Assembly: GCA_965113315.1 (NCBI GenBank)
Contig: OZ220369.1
DNA from: Podarcis vaucheri
Taxonomy: Eukaryota
Strand: one strand, 5' to 3'
Length of the DNA stretch: 64,000 nt
Positions 2,171 through 8,448 of this stretch are shown one piece after another. The position numbers and the translations under genes were made by a program. Below the pieces are notes generated by a model. It ran no database searches. It saw nothing but the letters and a program-made list of their open reading frames with translations, and was not told where the DNA came from. Position 1 is the first letter of the stretch. Every line of letters starts with the position of its first letter.

Positions 2171-2565
2171 CCTTCCAGTAGAGACCAACTAAGTTTGTTA
2201 CTGGTATGAGCTTTCACGTGCATGCACACTTCTTGAGATACACTGAAACAGAAGTCACCAGACCCTTATATATAGTGAGAGGGTGGGGAGGGTATTACTC
2301 AGAAGGGTGGTGGGAATGGGTGATTGGCTGATAGGTGTGGTAAACCTGTTGACGACTGCAATTCCACCTTTCTGAGTAATACCCCTCCCCACCCTCTCAC
2401 TCTATATAAGGGTCTGGTGACTTTTGTTACAGTGTATCTGAAGAAGTGTACATGCACACGAAAGCTCATACCAATAACTTAGTTGGTCTCTAAGGTGCTA
2501 CTGGAAGGATTTTTTGTTTGTTTGTTTTGACTATGACAGACCAACACGGCTACCTACCTGTAACT
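2171..2565. mobile_element. Penelope-like element terminal (pLTR) remnant as an inverted duplication
   Basis: Arms ~2171-2310 and ~2364-2508 are near-perfect reverse complements. Contains CTGAAGA...GAAAGCTCATAC followed by TTAGTTGGTCTCTAAGGTGCTAC, typical of reptile PLE ends. Confidence 0.75.
2434..2471 (+). ncRNA. Minimal type I hammerhead ribozyme motif (Penelope-associated)
   Basis: GTAT-CTGAAGA-AGTGTACATGCACAC-GAAA-GC-TC-ATAC: CUGANGA and GAAA boxes, stem II hairpin, GUAU/AUAC stem I, CUC triplet, palindromic AGCU in place of stem III. Confidence 0.7.
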
Positions 2566-3432
2566 ACGACAGTTAACATCATAGATACCAGGGGTGTGCA
2601 AGAGAAAGTATGCATGTACTCACTTAACTTTTCCAAGGGATTTGTGCAAAAGTTGGGTCCAGTAGAATTAATCTGAGCCTTGAGAGCACATCGTGTGGGA
2701 AACGGGTGTCCAACTGCCTCCTTCAGTTCTAAGTACTTTTCAAGGGAGAAGGTGGTAAGGAACCTCATCATCTCATGATCAAGGGGGCACTGAGCCAGGA
2801 GTTCAGGGGCTTTATGTGGGCTGGGAGACATCATTGTGGCAGTGCAAGTCAGACTGGCAAACTGGGTCTTAAAATAATGTTTTCTCAATTCTTGTTCATA
2901 CTATAACCACATTTGCTATAAAATTGATTCTGACCCAGATTTGGGATTGAAAATGTCTTGATGGTCCTGCTAGATGGTCTATACCAGTGGAGGGTGCGTG
3001 CGAGTATATTGGCTCTCCTATAGCTTTTCAGCTTTTAATACTAATATGTTTTGAAGGGAGGGAACTGGCACTACACTTTAGTGACTTATCTGGCTGATAG
3101 CAATCCTAGGGGACTGCTGCTCTGCCCCAAGGCTCCTCTTGGCTGTGTCACCCTCCTGTGCCCTCCCCATTCATTTGCTCAGGGGCCCTTTCATTTCTTG
3201 GATGGATTTTTAAATGTCATTGTAAGCTGCCTTGGGAACTAAGGCTGAGAGATGGGGAACAAATACATAATTGCAAGGCTTGATTTAAATATGAGGCAGT
3301 GTGGGGAGACAGACTGTTTAATAATGCATCTCTGTCTTCAAGCAAACTTATACATTAGCATTCACCATATACTGTCAGTACAAAACATTTATTTAGTGTC
3401 AACAGTGCATAACACCCCTCTCAATTCCAGAC

Positions 3433-5490
3433 TAAGGTTGCCATATTTTGAAGAACAAAAAAGAGGACACATTTGCTAACTTCTACTTTTAATTACCTTA
3501 TGGTATGTCACTTTCAAATGCACTTTGTTCTTCTTTCTGATGTTGTCTGGCCCAAGCATATTTCTCTGTAGATCTTATCTTATTCAACAACTGCTTATTG
3601 CTTAAGAGATAAGCATGAAATTCCTTGCAAGTAAAGTGCTTATAATTATATTGTACTAGCAATATACTCCGCAGCGATTCCAAGGATAAGTGGCCTCTTT
3701 CTTTGCTCCACCAACTCTGCATCAAAGAGAAAATGTGTTCCATATTTGCATTATCATGTGATGCAACAGCAAAAAAAAACTGTGCAATCTTCAAAAGTTC
3801 TGAGTGGCACATGTTTTGGGAAGTCTCAAAGTACTTGGTCCACTTCTGATGTGCCTGAAGATTAATGAACCTATCATCACCTTTGCATTGATCCACAAAC
3901 TTCTTGAGGTTGCAGAATTGATCAAAGCACTTCACATCATCTATGGAAACATCCCTGTCCAGGAGAAATTTTATGGAAAGTTCTACCTTATCCCACTCAA
4001 GTGACTCACTAAGAGACATCCACATGAAGCATGAAAACTCTTTCATGGACTCCATCCATTTCCCCAAATATTCTATGCAGCTGTCATATAAGCTATTTAC
4101 ATCTGCATAGAATTTGTTACACTCTGCACCAAGACCCTCCTTACGCTTTTCTTCTAGAAGGCTCTTAACTTTGAGGGACATAAAGTTGTTGCTTTTATGT
4201 TCATTGAGCACGTTCTGAACACAAAGCAGAACTTTCAGAACCTCTACAACTGAATTATTTTCCCTTTCAAGTTCTAAAATGTATGAGTGAAACATACTCA
4301 TGAGAGACTGCAAGTGCAATAAATAAACCTCACTAAACGCGTGCTCAAAAAACCTTTTTAACACTGTTGGTGGATTATTCTGCGAGAGAAAAAATGCCTT
4401 GACAGCTGGAAACACGCGAATGAGTCTATTGACGCCTGGAAATAATGACAACCACCTTGTCTTGCTATGAGATAGCAGCTTTTTGTATTCAGTATCTACA
4501 AATTCACAGTACTCTTTTAACTGCTCCGTTCGGACTGTATAGATGTGAAAGTACTGGTATATCTTGAAAATGATGCTCTCAACATCAATGTCCAAAGTTT
4601 CTGCTGCCTGATGAACACAATTATTCAAAATGTGTCCTGGACATCCCACACCAATTAAAGTTTTGTTATCTAGCTCATTGTTCAACTTTGCGAACACATT
4701 TCTTCCTTCTGAATCCCATCGTATCCCTCCAAACATTGTGTTGCAGTTGTCACCTATGAATGCTATGCATTTCTTTAGCAGTCCTTTACTTTCAAGAGTT
4801 TCCTTCACGTATGACAAGATTGTATCTGCAGTCTCATTGGGTTGGCTTTGCATTTCAATTATTTTGGACTGCAAACCACCACTTTTCCAGTCAAAATACT
4901 GAATAACTATTGGAAACACCTTTACTGAACCATGGTTACTCCCATCAGTAGAAACTCCACAATAACATACGTCATTTTCTTCAATGCTTTTCAAAACATT
5001 TTCCAAACAATCGGGTGCCAAGACAGAATTTACAATTGCTTCTGTCTTGGTTTTTGCACTTGAAAACTTCCTTGCGATATTGGAATCCGGGAATGTCGTC
5101 TTCAGTAGGCCTGATGTGCACGCCATCACATTATAACTGTTGTGGTGCTTAACAGTGTGAAAAGCAAAAGTTCCTTCAGCTGCAGTTACTTCATCTTCCA
5201 ATTTGCTACATGGTTTTATGAAAAAGTCTGTTAATTGTGCTGAGGAAGCTTCGCCTCGAATTGCTTTTTTGTGTTTTTCGGACTCCACGTGTGATTGCAA
5301 GTCACGTCCTCCTTTATTTGCCACAGAGACAAATGTACCTGGTTTACATATCATGCATTCACCTTCAAAATCATCTCTACCTCTTCTAAAACAGGTATAC
5401 TTCTTCTGTAGCCCAACAGAAAATTTACATTTTCTTTTCGGCATTTTGTTGTGTCGAAGCACTAAATCTCAGTTTTGCCTGAAATGACTG
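3433..5490 (-). mobile_element. hAT DNA transposon body with one recognisable end
   Basis: TAAGGTTGCCATATTTTGAAGAACAAAAAAGAGGACA at 3433 resembles Blackjack-type TAGGGTGACCATA ends and lies 65 bp beyond the stop codon. No matching end with a TSD found, so the upper boundary is approximate. Confidence 0.7.
3498..5444 (-). CDS. hAT-superfamily (Blackjack-like) transposase, 648 aa from ATG (MPKRKCKF...), uninterrupted
   Basis: BED-like CxxC...HxxxxxH (CMIC...HVESEKH), STDGS, IGDNCNTM, CPGHILN (CxxH), KTRWLS and a C-terminal NANMEHIFS hAT motif. The track start at 5462 is GTG; the first ATG is 5444, with an in-frame TGA at 5471-5469. Confidence 0.9.
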   Translation of the reverse strand: MPKRKCKFSVGLQKKYTCFRRGRDDFEGECMICKPGTFVSVANKGGRDLQSHVESEKHKKAIRGEASSAQLTDFFIKPCSKLEDEVTAAEGTFAFHTVKHHNSYNVMACTSGLLKTTFPDSNIARKFSSAKTKTEAIVNSVLAPDCLENVLKSIEENDVCYCGVSTDGSNHGSVKVFPIVIQYFDWKSGGLQSKIIEMQSQPNETADTILSYVKETLESKGLLKKCIAFIGDNCNTMFGGIRWDSEGRNVFAKLNNELDNKTLIGVGCPGHILNNCVHQAAETLDIDVESIIFKIYQYFHIYTVRTEQLKEYCEFVDTEYKKLLSHSKTRWLSLFPGVNRLIRVFPAVKAFFLSQNNPPTVLKRFFEHAFSEVYLLHLQSLMSMFHSYILELERENNSVVEVLKVLLCVQNVLNEHKSNNFMSLKVKSLLEEKRKEGLGAECNKFYADVNSLYDSCIEYLGKWMESMKEFSCFMWMSLSESLEWDKVELSIKFLLDRDVSIDDVKCFDQFCNLKKFVDQCKGDDRFINLQAHQKWTKYFETSQNMCHSELLKIAQFFFAVASHDNANMEHIFSLMQSWWSKERGHLSLESLRSILLVQYNYKHFTCKEFHAYLLSNKQLLNKIRSTEKYAWARQHQKEEQSAFESDIP

Positions 5491-6352
5491 AACCAGAAAG
5501 CAAAAACAGCTCTTGAAAGTAGTATGAAGAACTTAAGAAGTTTATACAATTATCCATTCCATGTGGGAAAATATTAGTCCAAGGTGTTATCCTGAATTTA
5601 AGGAGAATTTCAAAAGTTCATGAGGTAGGTTCTGCAGACTTCAGAAGTGTTTGAAGTGGAAAAGTGACTGAGCTGGTTTTAATCCCAATTTGCTTTTTAG
5701 TCAACGTTTTCCCTTTCAACCGAAGCAGACTCTGCAGGTCAACATCCAGCTATCTTTTGTCCCCCACAAGTGAGGCAACAGGTTGCAAAATATCCTCATG
5801 TTCAGAATCCAGATCACCTAGAAGGCCAGGCTGGGAAGAAGAGACAAGACACATTGCAATCAGTGTTCCTTTCTCCAGACGTGAACACCATGTACTTGTG
5901 AACAAGGAAGTCTTAAAATAAGAACATGCAACGAAATCCACACCGATTGCGCTGGAAGCATACGCTAAAGTCGGCAGAAAAAAGAGGTGAGAATGTCTTA
6001 CTGCAGGGTGAAACGGTGATACTATAATGGGAGGCAGGCGCGAAGGAAACCGGAGGAATTAAAACTGTCACCAAGCACGCTAGCAGAAGAGAAGGCAGTC
6101 CTCGGTGAAAGGAGGAGTTGCAGTTGCAACCCCAAGGCATAAGAGTTACTTGGGAAAAGTCCCCGTAACGCACCGTGTAGCTTACTTCTGAGTAAACACG
6201 CAACAGGACGGCGCTGCAAACCACCAGAGGTGGCAAGCTCGGATCCGGGACCCGAGGAAAAGAAAGAGGGGGCGGAGGAGGAAAGGCGCCCGCGGATCTC
6301 AGCGCCTAACCTGCGGGACTGCGCGCGTGTTTCCTGCCCTCCATCTCCCCTC

Positions 6353-6507
6353 CATAGCTGTCAACCTTCCCTTTTTTTGCGGGAAATTCCCTTATTCCAG
6401 CGCCGTTTCCCGCTGCTATCCCGGATTGTTAGATATCCCGTAGACTGTCCCCGGGACAGGTGAGGCTGTTGATCCCTTATTTTCGAATCTGAAAGTTGAC
6501 AGCTATG
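6353..6507. mobile_element. 155-bp non-autonomous hAT MITE
   Basis: Perfect 13-bp TIR CATAGCTGTCAAC/GTTGACAGCTATG and perfect 8-bp TSD CTCCCCTC (6345-6352, 6508-6515). Confidence 0.92.
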
Positions 6508-6888
6508 CTCCCCTCCCATTTCATAGCCAGGTAAAGTCGGGTACGACTCCCCCCACCCCAGGTTGCCCTATCTACACTCTCCCTCGCAACCCGCCTCCAA
6601 CTGCCGCTCCTCGACCAAGCCGGACCCCAACGGAACTTGAGTCCCATTATTTTTCCCCCTTGGAAGAAGAAAGAAGACGGGGGAAGGACGGAGAGGCCAC
6701 ATGCTCGAGGTAGGGGGCGAAAGACCGAACTATGGGAGCCTCAGAGCCTGGCTTCTCCTCCCTCTCCCCCCCCCGGACGCGCCCCGCCCCCCACACGCAA
6801 ACATTGTTTCCTCCGCCTCCTCTTCCCTCAGGCCGGTCGGCGGTGTGGAGGGAGGAGGAGGAAGCGGCGTCGCCGCCGCGACTCTCAC

Positions 6889-7120
6889 CTGCCAGCCAAG
6901 TTCCGGCAAAGCACAGCAGCTCCAGTCGGGACCCCGGATTTTGAACGCTCCTCTTTGCCGCCGTTTCTCCCCCGCCGCGCCCACAAGGCCTCGCTCCAGT
7001 CTGCCAGCCAGTTCCAAAATGGCGCGGCTCAGGCATCCGCGATGCCTTGCGAACAAGCCTCGCGAGAGCTCGCCGCCAACAGCCGCCGCGAGCTGCCGAC
7101 GAGACTTGGCTGCGGGCAGG
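6889..7120 (-). other. Candidate non-coding first exon of a minus-strand transcript (5' end approximate)
   Basis: CAG|GTGAGA donor at 6889/6888 inside the CpG island, with GCCATTTT in the exon. Confidence 0.5.
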
Positions 7121-7370
7121 TGGGCTGGAGGAAGGGTCGTGCGCGCGCCAGACGTTGCAATTAATTTGAAAGCAAATAACGGAAATTTTTTAGTTTCCCC
7201 ATTCGCCTCCGTCATCCAGCCCGGAGAACGAAGAGGGCGCCTGGACAGCGCCACTTCGCGGCCGCTCTGAGGAACTTCAGGAAAAAGGAAGAAGAAAAGA
7301 GCCCGTGCTTGTCGCGCTTCGCTGACGTCATCGAGAGACGCGGTTGCCAGGGCAGCCAACGCCGAGGAAG

Positions 7371-7436
7371 ATGATGGAGGAGAGCGAGGAAGAGCGGCAG
7401 CGACTTATGCTGAGGAGGAGAGTGGTGACGCTTCAG
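7371..7436 (+). CDS. IQCC: IQCC coding exon 1
   Basis: MMEESEEERQRLMLRRRVVTLQ then CAG|gtgccg; corresponds to human MEPELLVRKVSALQ. Confidence 0.85.
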
Positions 7437-8117
7437 GTGCCGGAAGCAGATTAGTGGGTGGCATCGGTTGGCATAGTGCACCTGCCACTCAAGACAGACC
7501 TAGGGGTGCTCGTCCTCATGGTTTGGCTTCCTATCATGGCCTCATCCCCCTGGGGACCCTGAAAATGTGTAAATACACATTTCACCCATCCCACCCCTTT
7601 CCTCAGTGATTCCCTTGCAGCAAACAAACTGCTCTGCTGTTTATTTTGTGCTGCTGCTGCTGCTGTTTTTAAATGGAAATGGTGGCTTCTGTTAAAGAAT
7701 GCCCAGAGGGAAAAGTTCCCAAAAGTGGTGGTGGTAGCATGTAATATATAAATATGCACACATACATATGCCTTTTGCTCCTCTTTCTTTCCTTTCCTGC
7801 CTCCAGCATCTCCTCTCTTGGGATTGGGGTCAGGAGCGCAGTATACTAGGACTGCCAACTTCCTAACTGGCCTTTCTCCTGCATCTTCCACAGCAGCCTG
7901 GCAAAGGTGGAGATAGAAAAACCATCACTATATAATTCCTGCTTGTTGGGCTACTTTTTAAAGCCACAAGACCAGGAAGTGGGGGGAAGGGGACTCATGG
8001 CAACCCTAGAAGACTGGCCTGTGTGCACTTGTCTTATTAAACCAGGCTTGAGCTAATGACCTTTAATTCCTTCCTAATTTGTGATTGTTATTTTTTTATG
8101 ATTCATTTACTTCCTAG

Positions 8118-8261
8118 GCTCATGTCAGGGGTTACCTGGTCAGGAAGAGATTTAAAAGCTTAAAGGGGGAATATGAGAGCATCGTCAAGGAGATTGAAGG
8201 GGATCTGGATTGGCTGAAGTGGAACAGTCATTCCATGCCTGTGCCGGTGTTTCTTCCAAAG
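8118..8261 (+). CDS. IQCC: IQCC coding exon 2 (IQ motif)
   Basis: AHVRGYLVRKRFKSLKGEYESIVKEIEGDLDWLKW...FLPK matches recalled human [30 protein letters not shown]; canonical ag/gt, phase 0. Confidence 0.93.
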
Positions 8262-8448
8262 GTACGGTTACTGGTTCTTTCTGCTCTTGGTAGAAGCTGG
8301 CAGTGCTTATAATTTCGCTGGCTTTTAATTGCACGAGGAGGAAAGAGAAGAGGGAAATGAAAACTGACATCAGTAAAAGTGTGGGTGATACTTAATGTTG
8401 CAGCCATGCATTGAAAATGGTGCTCTTCTTCCTCTGTCTTAAATGTAG

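Follow-up and report, generated by a model that had tools for sequence, protein, structure and literature searches.

In the lizard Podarcis vaucheri, a minus-strand open reading frame of 648 codons encodes a hAT transposase, and the locus around it is probably a lacertid-specific domesticated host gene, one of three paralogues, that is expressed from a captured bidirectional promoter. An autonomous hAT element, of a family that is still TIR-bearing in other animals, would have inserted upstream of an IQ-motif gene, at a distance of about 1.5 kb, and would have lost its 5' end, so that excision would no longer be possible. The gene would then be transcribed as an upstream-antisense product of the neighbour's CpG-island promoter, with a non-coding exon 1 (about 7000 to 6889) spliced to an acceptor at 5830, and exon 2 would consist of the leader, the 648-codon frame, 65 nt of the transposon 3' terminus, and flanking host sequence that includes the AATAAA signal (Table 1). 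The protein probably now serves the host, most likely by binding specific DNA sequences as a dimer. Vertebrate regulators have repeatedly arisen by the domestication of transposases, and the lizard gene is a further example of the well-known class of domesticated hAT genes. Well-documented young domestications are useful because their steps are still readable, which in this case are one transposon end left in the 3' UTR, the loss of the other end, a borrowed promoter and first exon, and a poly(A) signal in the host flank. All coordinates refer to the window, which is the whole 64-kb stretch of DNA that was analysed.

Table 1. Features of the transposase-derived gene and of its divergent neighbour
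Feature	Position	Strand	Evidence
Non-coding exon 1, minimum extent; donor CAG/GTGAGA after 6889	6889..6999	-	X17 contig record 7 covers 6889-6999 and resumes at 5830
Intron 1, 1058 nt, GT..AG	5831..6888	-	Joint 5830/6889 (plus strand CT..AC) in X2 (depth 25.9) and X17
5' UTR portion of exon 2, 386 nt, fast-evolving	5445..5830	-	Contigs continuous over 5443-5830
Coding sequence, 648-aa hAT transposase-derived protein	3498..5444	-	CCHH finger C30/C33/H52/H58; D167, D232, E569; C268/H271; W331
Transposon 3' terminus remnant in 3' UTR; TIR 3445-3433	3433..3497	-	Ungapped alignment A3 with termini of seven TE loci
AATAAA poly(A) signal, host flank past the transposon end	3388..3393	-	Sequence
CpG island as bidirectional promoter	6600..7450	.	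GC 0.625, CpG observed/expected 0.95
Neighbour exon 1, coding start ("IQCC" in the original prediction; carries an IQ motif)	7371..7436	+	ATG 7371
Neighbour exon 2, opens with second half of IQ motif	8118..8261	+	Pfam IQ E 0.0032; stranded reads on plus strand

Transcript structure and promoter

A GT..AG splice joint from 6889 to 5830 is present in RNA-like contigs of two studies, and the donor that had been predicted, with 6889 as the last exon base, is the one used by the spliced contigs in both. The acceptor had been expected at 5487 or 5478, but contigs are unbroken across 5443-5830 and the real acceptor AG lies at 5832-5831, preceded by the tract gtcttgtctcttcttcccag; the 5' UTR of exon 2 is therefore 386 nt long. 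The expected splicing as such was thus recovered, in two studies and with stranded reads on the expected strand, whereas the position of the acceptor had to be corrected. The exon-2 leader contains five upstream ATGs (5799, 5745, 5621, 5562, 5557) that speak for a weak translation, and a blastn comparison of leader and intron with 80 related loci gave no homology. An unrelated MITE-like repeat (inverted repeat I7) is found inside intron 1 at 6353-6507. In all these analyses the exons were treated separately, not as a joined spliced mRNA.

Stranded raw reads assign the RNA of 3288-5651 to the minus strand and that of 8016-8400 to the opposite strand. At the 5' side, coverage of the bin 6834-7030 is present in 4/4 runs, and three of these runs have no coverage in the following bin 7031-7227. 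At the 3' side, depth falls to zero between the bins 3288-3484 and 3091-3287 in X17, X19 and X24, and in X2 one longer contig reaches to 2918. The AATAAA at 3393-3388 had been proposed to lie in the flank beyond the TIR, and this agrees with a transposon end at 3433 and with the drop of depth in bin 3288-3484 in three runs. Expression is low, the raw RNA run has a low read depth, and the sequence is missing from one sample of study P6. Expression is of the host type, with a joint that begins in the CpG island, strand-specific RNA, and an AATAAA located beyond the TIR.

The plus-strand IQ-motif gene begins about 200 bp away inside the same CpG island, which also includes the donor, as had been stated before. 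On the minus strand the exon extends to 6999 or further, on the plus strand exon coverage begins at 7200, and stranded reads on one side run opposite to those on the other. The neighbour has a joint from 7436 to 8118 (GT..AG; reported as 7434/8116, cut +2) in X19 and in one X24 read, and its IQ motif spans the exon 1/2 junction, with positions 9-21 of the Pfam IQ profile at exon-2 residues 1-13; for its exon 3, an Atlas search returned no name. The proposed arrangement of a two-exon transposase-derived gene head-to-head with this neighbour on a CpG island is thus borne out by the joint from 6889 to 5830 and by the opposed stranded reads.

The encoded protein and the remaining transposon end

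The frame begins with an ATG at 5444 and ends with a stop codon at 3500-3498; an upstream in-frame stop is close by, and the A at -3 as well as the absence of interruptions are as originally described. Single-protein searches of Pfam and of PDB sequences yielded nothing useful, and the assignment required a family profile together with a structure model. The AlphaFold model (pLDDT 81.7) has a hAT fold, with Hermes as 10/10 of the best ten Foldseek matches (E 5.5e-9, TM (target) 0.66), and contains an RNase-H-like core that is split by an all-helical insertion domain, i.e. the Hermes fold. The family profile matches the C-terminal catalytic motif of Hermes (E 9e-5). D167, D232, E569, C268/H271 and R330/W331 are family-invariant columns, of which the E and the CxxH motifs align with Hermes, and the CCHH pattern C30, C33, H52, H58 is conserved. 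In the 648-aa protein, fixed changes affect otherwise invariant motifs or positions next to them, namely A270G in CPAH, R570H beside the catalytic E, Q578W and an insertion of 1 aa. The Pfam model Dimer_Tnp_hAT (PF05699) is matched by 21/37 aligned relatives and not by the window protein itself at E 0.01. The protein would have the full hAT architecture, with a basic N-terminus carrying the CCHH finger, the catalytic core, the helical insertion, and a C-terminal dimerisation region. Of the earlier designation "ZBED-like", the derivation from a hAT element stands, whereas the BED finger does not, since no Pfam zf-BED match (PF02892) is obtained up to E 1 and zf-DBF is only sub-threshold; the nearest named groups are hAT derivatives of the FAM200/ZBED5/GTF2IRD2 type.

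The surviving transposon end at 3433 reads TATGGCAACCTTA on the gene strand. The final 38 nt up to this position align ungapped with the 3' termini of relatives (28/38), and the similarity stops exactly at 3433. The relatives used in this comparison carry perfect 13-nt TIRs (TAGGGCTACCATA), the ends of the family's elements are represented by TAGGGYTRCCATA, and the terminus is homologous to those of the TIR-bounded elements L002 and L004. A 5' TIR partner was sought in 5445-7400, where nothing scored above shuffled sequence, including the candidate ends at 6743 and 6570, and an inverted-repeat search around the frame found no TIR pair. A weak inverted pair (3381-3398 / 5460-5477) was dismissed, given the absence of a TSD and the location of the true 3' end at 3433. 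No TSD is readable, since the loss of the 5' end leaves the 3' flank without a counterpart, and the flanks of 3433 do not match those of a TIR-like site at 8008. The single degenerate TIR that lacks a partner and a TSD is therefore as first noted. Within the 64-kb window there is no second copy of the frame and no element with a matching TIR, except for one uncertain solo match, again at 8008. Several RNA contigs match only about the last 54 nt of the transposon (3439-3492) and part from it at the element boundary, which means that other copies with the same end exist. This may hint at an origin of the paralogue copies by transposition and not by segmental duplication.

Orthologues, paralogues and selection

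Intact 648-aa proteins with 96-99% identity, one per species, are annotated in P. raffonei, P. lilfordi, P. muralis and Zootoca vivipara, and the genes of these four other lacertids are on chromosomes of 85-97 Mb. The only tie of another species to the locus itself is a transcript of organism B that carries the same host exon 1. The gene appears to be restricted to lacertid lizards, as far as annotated proteins show, and the suggestion that it may be lineage-specific agrees with counterparts that are found only in lacertids (three other Podarcis species and Zootoca). Among annotated proteins, Lacerta agilis is not represented in cluster 1. Many near-identical copies elsewhere would have spoken against a host gene, and neither the annotated proteins nor the RNA contigs contained any. 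Non-orthologous relatives reach 79-85% identity at the closest, and the closest proteins outside lacertids, fishes and snakes among them, 58-79%.

By its sequence relationships, the gene is evidently not a singleton but one of three lacertid paralogues. The two other groups are likewise open and conserved across lacertids; in one the first catalytic D is replaced (D167G), the other carries E569G and a 5-aa deletion, and the complete catalytic set of D167, D232, E569, C268/H271 and W331 is retained only in the window gene's paralogue. In the tree, the three lacertid groups form one clade, within which the branching of each group follows species relationships. Fish sequences of the family are placed inconsistently with fish phylogeny. 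As two sister groups are conserved in spite of a lost catalytic residue, catalysis is probably dispensable for the function that has been retained in the family, and the window copy could still cut DNA. One active site is intact and two paralogues each miss a different catalytic residue, and this contrast therefore makes it testable whether catalysis or only DNA binding survives domestication.

Compared with organism B, a sister species, the frame has 2 non-synonymous and 8 synonymous differences (p about 7e-5, omega about 0.1; with 1562 N and 382 S sites, about 0.06-0.08), which are small numbers that include only the best-supported read differences. They are far from the dN/dS near 1 that would have spoken against a host gene. 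The pooled N:S ratio is 4:10 (binomial p 3.9e-5). In X2, 10 substitutions and a 5-nt indel in the 386-nt leader stand against 8 substitutions in the 1944-nt frame, and the leader diverges about six times faster (p 1.7e-4). Random substitutions in the frame create a stop at a share of 5.3%, and the other lacertid sequences are open in 14/14 cases. Differences at 5413-5415 were set aside as probable paralogue-contig artefacts because of their position close to contig ends and their agreement with the residue of the paralogues. An avoidance of family-conserved columns by cluster-1 substitutions was not significant (7/183 vs 30/443, p 0.19). One low-depth X19 contig has a 1-nt homopolymer insertion at 5264 that, if real, is a frameshift in organism D. 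Taken together, the frame appears to have been under purifying selection since before the Podarcis/Zootoca split.

Alternative explanations and related systems

The locus could in principle be a young autonomous hAT copy that is still mobile and mimics a gene by a recent insertion. The intact frame, the full catalytic set, and the mobility of the family elsewhere (TIR-bounded copies, a fish distribution against fish phylogeny) fit this, but it is already contradicted and hardly conceivable, as a 5' TIR and a TSD are absent, the closest non-orthologous relatives are merely 79-85% identical, the same gene occurs in five species, and the transcript begins in host sequence. It is also very improbable that the RNA is a functionless relic, in which divergent CpG-island transcription runs as a by-product into an undecayed transposon frame. 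Divergent promoters commonly yield unstable antisense RNA, and the low read depth and the long leader with its upstream ATGs would be in line with such a relic; yet all 648 codons are intact in five species, Zootoca included, the frame diverges six times more slowly than the leader with 2 N to 8 S, and two further paralogue groups are open across lacertids.

A captured transposase that is no regulator but an immobilised source of catalysis, driven by the host promoter and mobilising non-autonomous or sister elements elsewhere, is improbable, too. It would explain why the window paralogue alone keeps the full set of active-site residues, and the RNA contigs that diverge beyond 3439-3492 point to further copies with the same end. 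However, selection at the transposon level cannot keep a single immobile copy over such a time span, and host-level selection is therefore needed; in addition, A270G, R570H, Q578W and the 1-aa insertion lie in or beside invariant motifs, the protein stays below the threshold of the Pfam hAT dimerisation model, and the window offers no same-TIR element besides the uncertain match at 8008. As hAT proteins act as dimers or higher oligomers, it is conceivable, albeit rather unlikely, that the three lacertid paralogues constitute one system, with the intact copy and its two catalytically dead sisters in mixed complexes. If so, the mixed complex could be a host-controlled machine that cleaves or rearranges DNA, or alternatively a dominant-negative brake on still-active family relatives in the lizard genome. 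The domesticated host gene is the preferred reading.

As such, the gene resembles the Buster- or Charlie-derived genes FAM200, ZBED5, ZBED8 and GTF2IRD2, which also have the full-length transposase frame in one coding exon behind a non-coding upstream exon, a fold of the hAT type combined with an N-terminal zinc finger and, in the lizard probably, a C-terminal dimerisation region, lost transposon end(s), and purifying selection at a fixed locus, although in the lizard the organism B transcript is what ties another species to the locus. The nearest named Atlas clusters contain the families FAM200-ZBED5_RNase-like, FAM200-GTF2IRD2-like, DUF4371 and Dimer_Tnp_hAT. Unlike these genes, the lizard gene is orthologous to none of them, is lacertid-restricted with three paralogue groups, keeps the whole catalytic set in the window paralogue, and its protein gives no match in a local Pfam scan. 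The ZBED family (Hayward et al. 2013, PMC3606216) comprises hAT-derived host genes that are thought to be DNA-binding regulators, and its origin goes back to early jawed vertebrates. The lizard protein shares the hAT derivation and has a CCHH finger spacing reminiscent of BED fingers, but it has no Pfam BED finger and is lacertid-specific. With the Hermes transposase (PDB 2BW3, 4D1Q, 6DWZ, 8EDG) it shares the overall fold and the catalytic motifs at just 13-15% identity, and whereas the Hermes element is mobile with two TIRs and 8-bp TSDs, the lizard locus retains a single decayed end.

The first exon and promoter of the lizard gene agree with a proposed route by which genes originate from divergent transcription. 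As in genes born in this way, exon 1 and promoter are the antisense side of the neighbour's CpG island, and a U1-type donor is near the transcript start; in contrast to them, the lizard gene received its coding part in finished form from a transposon, and this part did not arise de novo. Literature searches with the LOC identifiers, or with Podarcis and transposase domestication, found nothing relevant on the gene. The counterparts in Podarcis, Zootoca and Lacerta are labelled "uncharacterized" LOC in RefSeq, and several of these genes are now supplied with a name and an origin; for P. lilfordi, the name given to the counterpart is "golgin subfamily A member 6C", apparently an erroneous label.

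Transcript structure and the shared CpG island

RNA was mapped on 2500-8400 from four runs, namely X24, raw stranded RNA-seq of organism B (a sister species), two transcriptome-sized contig sets, X2 and X17, each from a further study of organism B, and X19, such a contig set from organism D; exons were analysed one by one, by reference coordinates. The stretch 5831-6888 is skipped in X2 (depth 25.9) and in X17, in which one contig covers 5443-5830 and then 6889-6999, and the skipped stretch has plus-strand ends of CT..AC, so that it reads GT..AG in the minus-strand direction. The original prediction had named precisely this donor, and spliced RNA from 6889 is indeed found in X2 and X17, but the acceptor is not at 5487 or 5478 as had been proposed: the contigs run unbroken from 5830 through both positions into the ORF, and the joint is 6889 to 5830. 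As contigs tile 3495-5830, the entire CDS lies in one exon. The ORF is, as foreseen, uninterrupted and has an A at -3; an in-frame stop lies a few codons 5' of its ATG, and the exon-2 leader of 386 nt contains five upstream ATGs. No second copy of the ORF sequence was found in the window, which has no N bases, when it was compared with itself by tblastn and blastn.

In X24 the first mates of all pairs lie on the plus strand over 3288-5651 and on the minus strand over 8016-8400, which, given the usual library chemistry, means minus-strand RNA over the ORF and plus-strand RNA for the neighbouring IQ-motif gene. Exon 1 extends to at least 6999, and three runs have no coverage in the bin 7031-7227. 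GC content, about 0.38-0.40 across the ORF, climbs to 0.55-0.64 across 6000-7500, and CpG observed/expected is 0.95 for 6600-7450, compared with 0.39 for the ORF and 0.09 for the following intron, confirming the CpG island expected at the donor. From the exon positions (minus strand at least 6999, plus strand from 7200) it follows that the two genes start about 200 bp apart in this one island, in the divergent, head-to-head arrangement that had been predicted. The neighbour's exon 1 closes with the first half of an IQ motif and its exon 2 opens with the second half (Pfam IQ, E 0.0032, profile positions 9-21), which fits its candidate assignment as IQCC.

At the 3' end, depth stops within 3288-3484 in three runs, consistent with use of the AATAAA that had been noticed beyond the TIR. 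One X2 contig (2918-3524) spans this end and continues 450 nt past the AATAAA, and some reads of the stranded run in 3288-3484 run in the opposite direction, so that there is either a longer 3' UTR or an overlapping convergent plus-strand transcript, perhaps of the candidate DCDC2B. Two repeats also stand out by their RNA depth. At the intronic MITE-like element, RNA contig depth exceeds that of the adjoining sequence by a factor of hundreds to thousands, and loose contig ends accumulate at 6352/6353 and 6507-6512, which marks the element as a highly abundant repeat present in many transcripts; the repeat at 2500-2696, probably a SINE or similar element, has a contig depth of 640-1889, is very deep in all RNA runs and has loose ends at 2564-2566.

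Features of the hAT gene and its surroundings
Feature	Position	Strand	Remark
Exon-2 junction of IQ-motif gene	8118	plus	joined to 7436, GT..AG (reported as 7434/8116, cut +2)
Site resembling the family's 5' TIR	7991-8008	minus	TAGGGTTGCCATGAGTCC; intron 1 of IQ-motif gene
ATG of IQ-motif gene	7371	plus	
Palindromic CRE-like site	7319-7334		TGACGTCA; first exon / promoter-proximal region of IQ-motif gene
Exon-1 contig of IQ-motif gene	7200-7436	plus	
Donor of hAT gene	after 6889	minus	CAG|GTGAGA
MITE-like element	6353-6507		155 bp; 17-nt inverted ends CATAGCTGTCAACCTTC / GAAAGTTGACAGCTATG
Acceptor of hAT gene	5832-5831	minus	AG, preceded by gtcttgtctcttcttcccag
ORF, ATG	5444	minus	648 codons
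ORF, stop	3500-3498	minus	
3' end of element	3433	minus	TATGGCAACCTTA; 65 nt past stop codon
AATAAA	3393-3388	minus	host flank

Protein family and transposon ends

The single window protein matched no Pfam family, with zf-DBF as the sole sub-threshold match, and no PDB sequence. It has hundreds of relatives in the protein database, and a profile made from an alignment of 37 sequences hits the Hermes transposase at its C-terminal catalytic and dimerisation motif (E 9e-5) and also aligns the CxxH motif to Hermes. When the AlphaFold model built on this alignment (mean pLDDT 81.7) was compared with the PDB by Foldseek, all of the ten top matches were Hermes (best E 5.5e-9, TM 0.66 on target). Pfam Dimer_Tnp_hAT is reached by 21 of the 37 relatives, the nearest named Atlas clusters carry Dimer_Tnp_hAT, DUF4371, FAM200-ZBED5_RNase-like and FAM200-GTF2IRD2-like, and the protein retains C30, C33, H52 and H58 (CCHH finger) as well as D167, D232, C268, H271, W331 and E569, all family-invariant or nearly so. 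These profile and structure matches, clusters and residues place it among the hAT transposases, in the FAM200/ZBED5/GTF2IRD2-like section of that superfamily; the "ZBED-like" label is loose, and no BED finger of the Pfam type was detected.

Scanning of metagenome contigs gave 80 related loci, representing host DNA in host-associated samples. Two of them, L002 and L004 (the latter 2753 bp), have perfect 13-nt TIRs at both ends (TAGGGCTACCATA / TATGGTAGCCCTA), and five further loci have the same 3' end. The last 38 nt up to 3433 align ungapped to the relatives' termini (28/38 to L004) and all aligned sequences diverge directly beyond, which is why this position, recognised before as a degenerate TIR, is where the element really ends on its 3' side. 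The prediction that it stands alone also holds: in 5445-7400, the best matches to four 38-nt probes for a 5' partner were no better than shuffled sequence, and a repeat search gave no credible inverted-repeat pair around the ORF. With one end only, the element is not excisable, and a TSD is unreadable.

The site at 7991-8008 agrees in 12/13 positions with the degenerate TIR consensus, has GTCC at L004's offset and lies in the gene's orientation; it shows no TSD with 3433 and no nearby partner, the chance probability is about 0.1, and the site may be either coincidental or the solo end of a related element. In several RNA contigs the match is confined to 3439-3492, about 54 nt of the transposon 3' terminus, one diverging at 3439, outside the element, and five at 3492, where they enter a different C-terminal coding end. 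They thus come from other transcribed family copies with the same end in organism B.

Lacertid counterparts, selection and alternative readings

The exact protein is absent from the protein database. Its 90% cluster (cluster 1) holds 648-aa proteins of four species, one each, on 85-97 Mb chromosomes: Podarcis muralis (LOC114601727, three transcript accessions; 4 residue differences), P. lilfordi (6), P. raffonei (LOC128418927; 11) and Zootoca vivipara (LOC132592316; 25). Two paralogue groups with 83-85% identity, cluster 2 (Lacerta agilis, Zootoca, three Podarcis species) and cluster 3 (three Podarcis species), lie on a 41-43 Mb chromosome. In the maximum-likelihood tree the three form a single clade (SH-aLRT 96), branching within each matches species relationships, and the cluster 1 stem has less than half the length of either other stem; sister to them is a 79%-identical 648-aa protein known only from assembly contigs of about 2.5-2.7 kb. 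Other squamates have distant relatives only (snakes 50-58%, skink and Sceloporus 46-47%), and the fish sequences are distributed without regard to the phylogeny of their hosts, as would be expected if the family is mobile.

The locus is best read as a domesticated hAT transposase gene specific to lacertids, in keeping with the predicted two-exon, transposase-derived and possibly lineage-specific gene, with spliced RNA and close proteins in lacertids. In this reading, loss of the 5' end immobilised the element, the neighbour's CpG-island promoter drives its expression on the antisense side by way of a non-coding exon that was captured, and polyadenylation takes place in host flank. A young mobile copy, to which the intact ORF with its full catalytic set and the mobility of the family elsewhere might point, is less likely, since no 5' TIR is left and counterparts exist in four other species. 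That it is a transcribed relic is less likely, too: frames are open in 15/15 lacertid sequences, which is unexpected for a relic as 5.3% of random substitutions in the ORF create a stop. A caveat is one low-depth X19 contig with a single inserted nucleotide in a homopolymer at 5264. The X2 and X17 difference lists are essentially complete, since per-contig difference counts agree with the listed positions, and against organism B they give two non-synonymous changes, 3871 (R525K) and 3886 (C520Y), to eight synonymous ones (4062, 4067, 4269, 4281, 4515, 4692, 5130, 5340). The ORF has 1562 non-synonymous and 382 synonymous sites, so that omega, from small counts, comes to about 0.06-0.08; by hand calculation the neutral probability of at most 2/10 is about 7e-5, or about 2e-3 if just 70% of neutral changes are non-synonymous. 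Adding organism D's listed changes, an incomplete list, gives 4 to 10 (p 3.9e-5). In X2, the 386 nt of exon-2 leader show 10 substitutions plus an indel of 5 nt, versus 8 substitutions in the 1944-nt ORF (p 1.7e-4); avoidance of family-conserved columns by cluster-1 substitutions was not significant (p 0.19).

The leading proposal for the protein is that it may act as a dimeric DNA-binding factor, as two sister paralogue groups persist without a complete active site: in cluster 3 the first catalytic D is G, and in cluster 2 the catalytic E is G, with a 5-residue deletion. Cluster 1 retains all three catalytic residues, and as this triad is intact, DNA cleavage by the window paralogue may still occur; an immobile yet active transposase source for other elements is the less likely reading. 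Cluster 1 also carries fixed changes in otherwise near-invariant columns, A270G in CPAH, R570H beside the catalytic E and Q578W, and a fixed one-residue insertion, all common to Zootoca.

A literature search gave no paper naming the counterparts or describing transposase domestication in Podarcis. Such domestication is a well-known kind of event, to which this gene adds an instance (for background see PMC3606216 on ZBED evolution and PMC3014272, a survey of Anolis DNA transposons). In RefSeq the counterparts are uncharacterized LOC genes, and in P. lilfordi they are labelled "golgin subfamily A member 6C"; all P. lilfordi members of the three paralogue groups (P0121, P0128, P0130, P0131) bear this name, which appears to be a mislabel of hAT-derived proteins. 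The snake relatives form their own clade with a truncated C-terminus. Those of 575-580 aa (P0014, P0025-P0040, P0168, P0169) range from boas and pythons to colubroids, roughly match snake phylogeny, end directly after an FSLM motif and have the catalytic E replaced in some, and they appear to be a lineage of their own within this hAT family, possibly a domesticated one.
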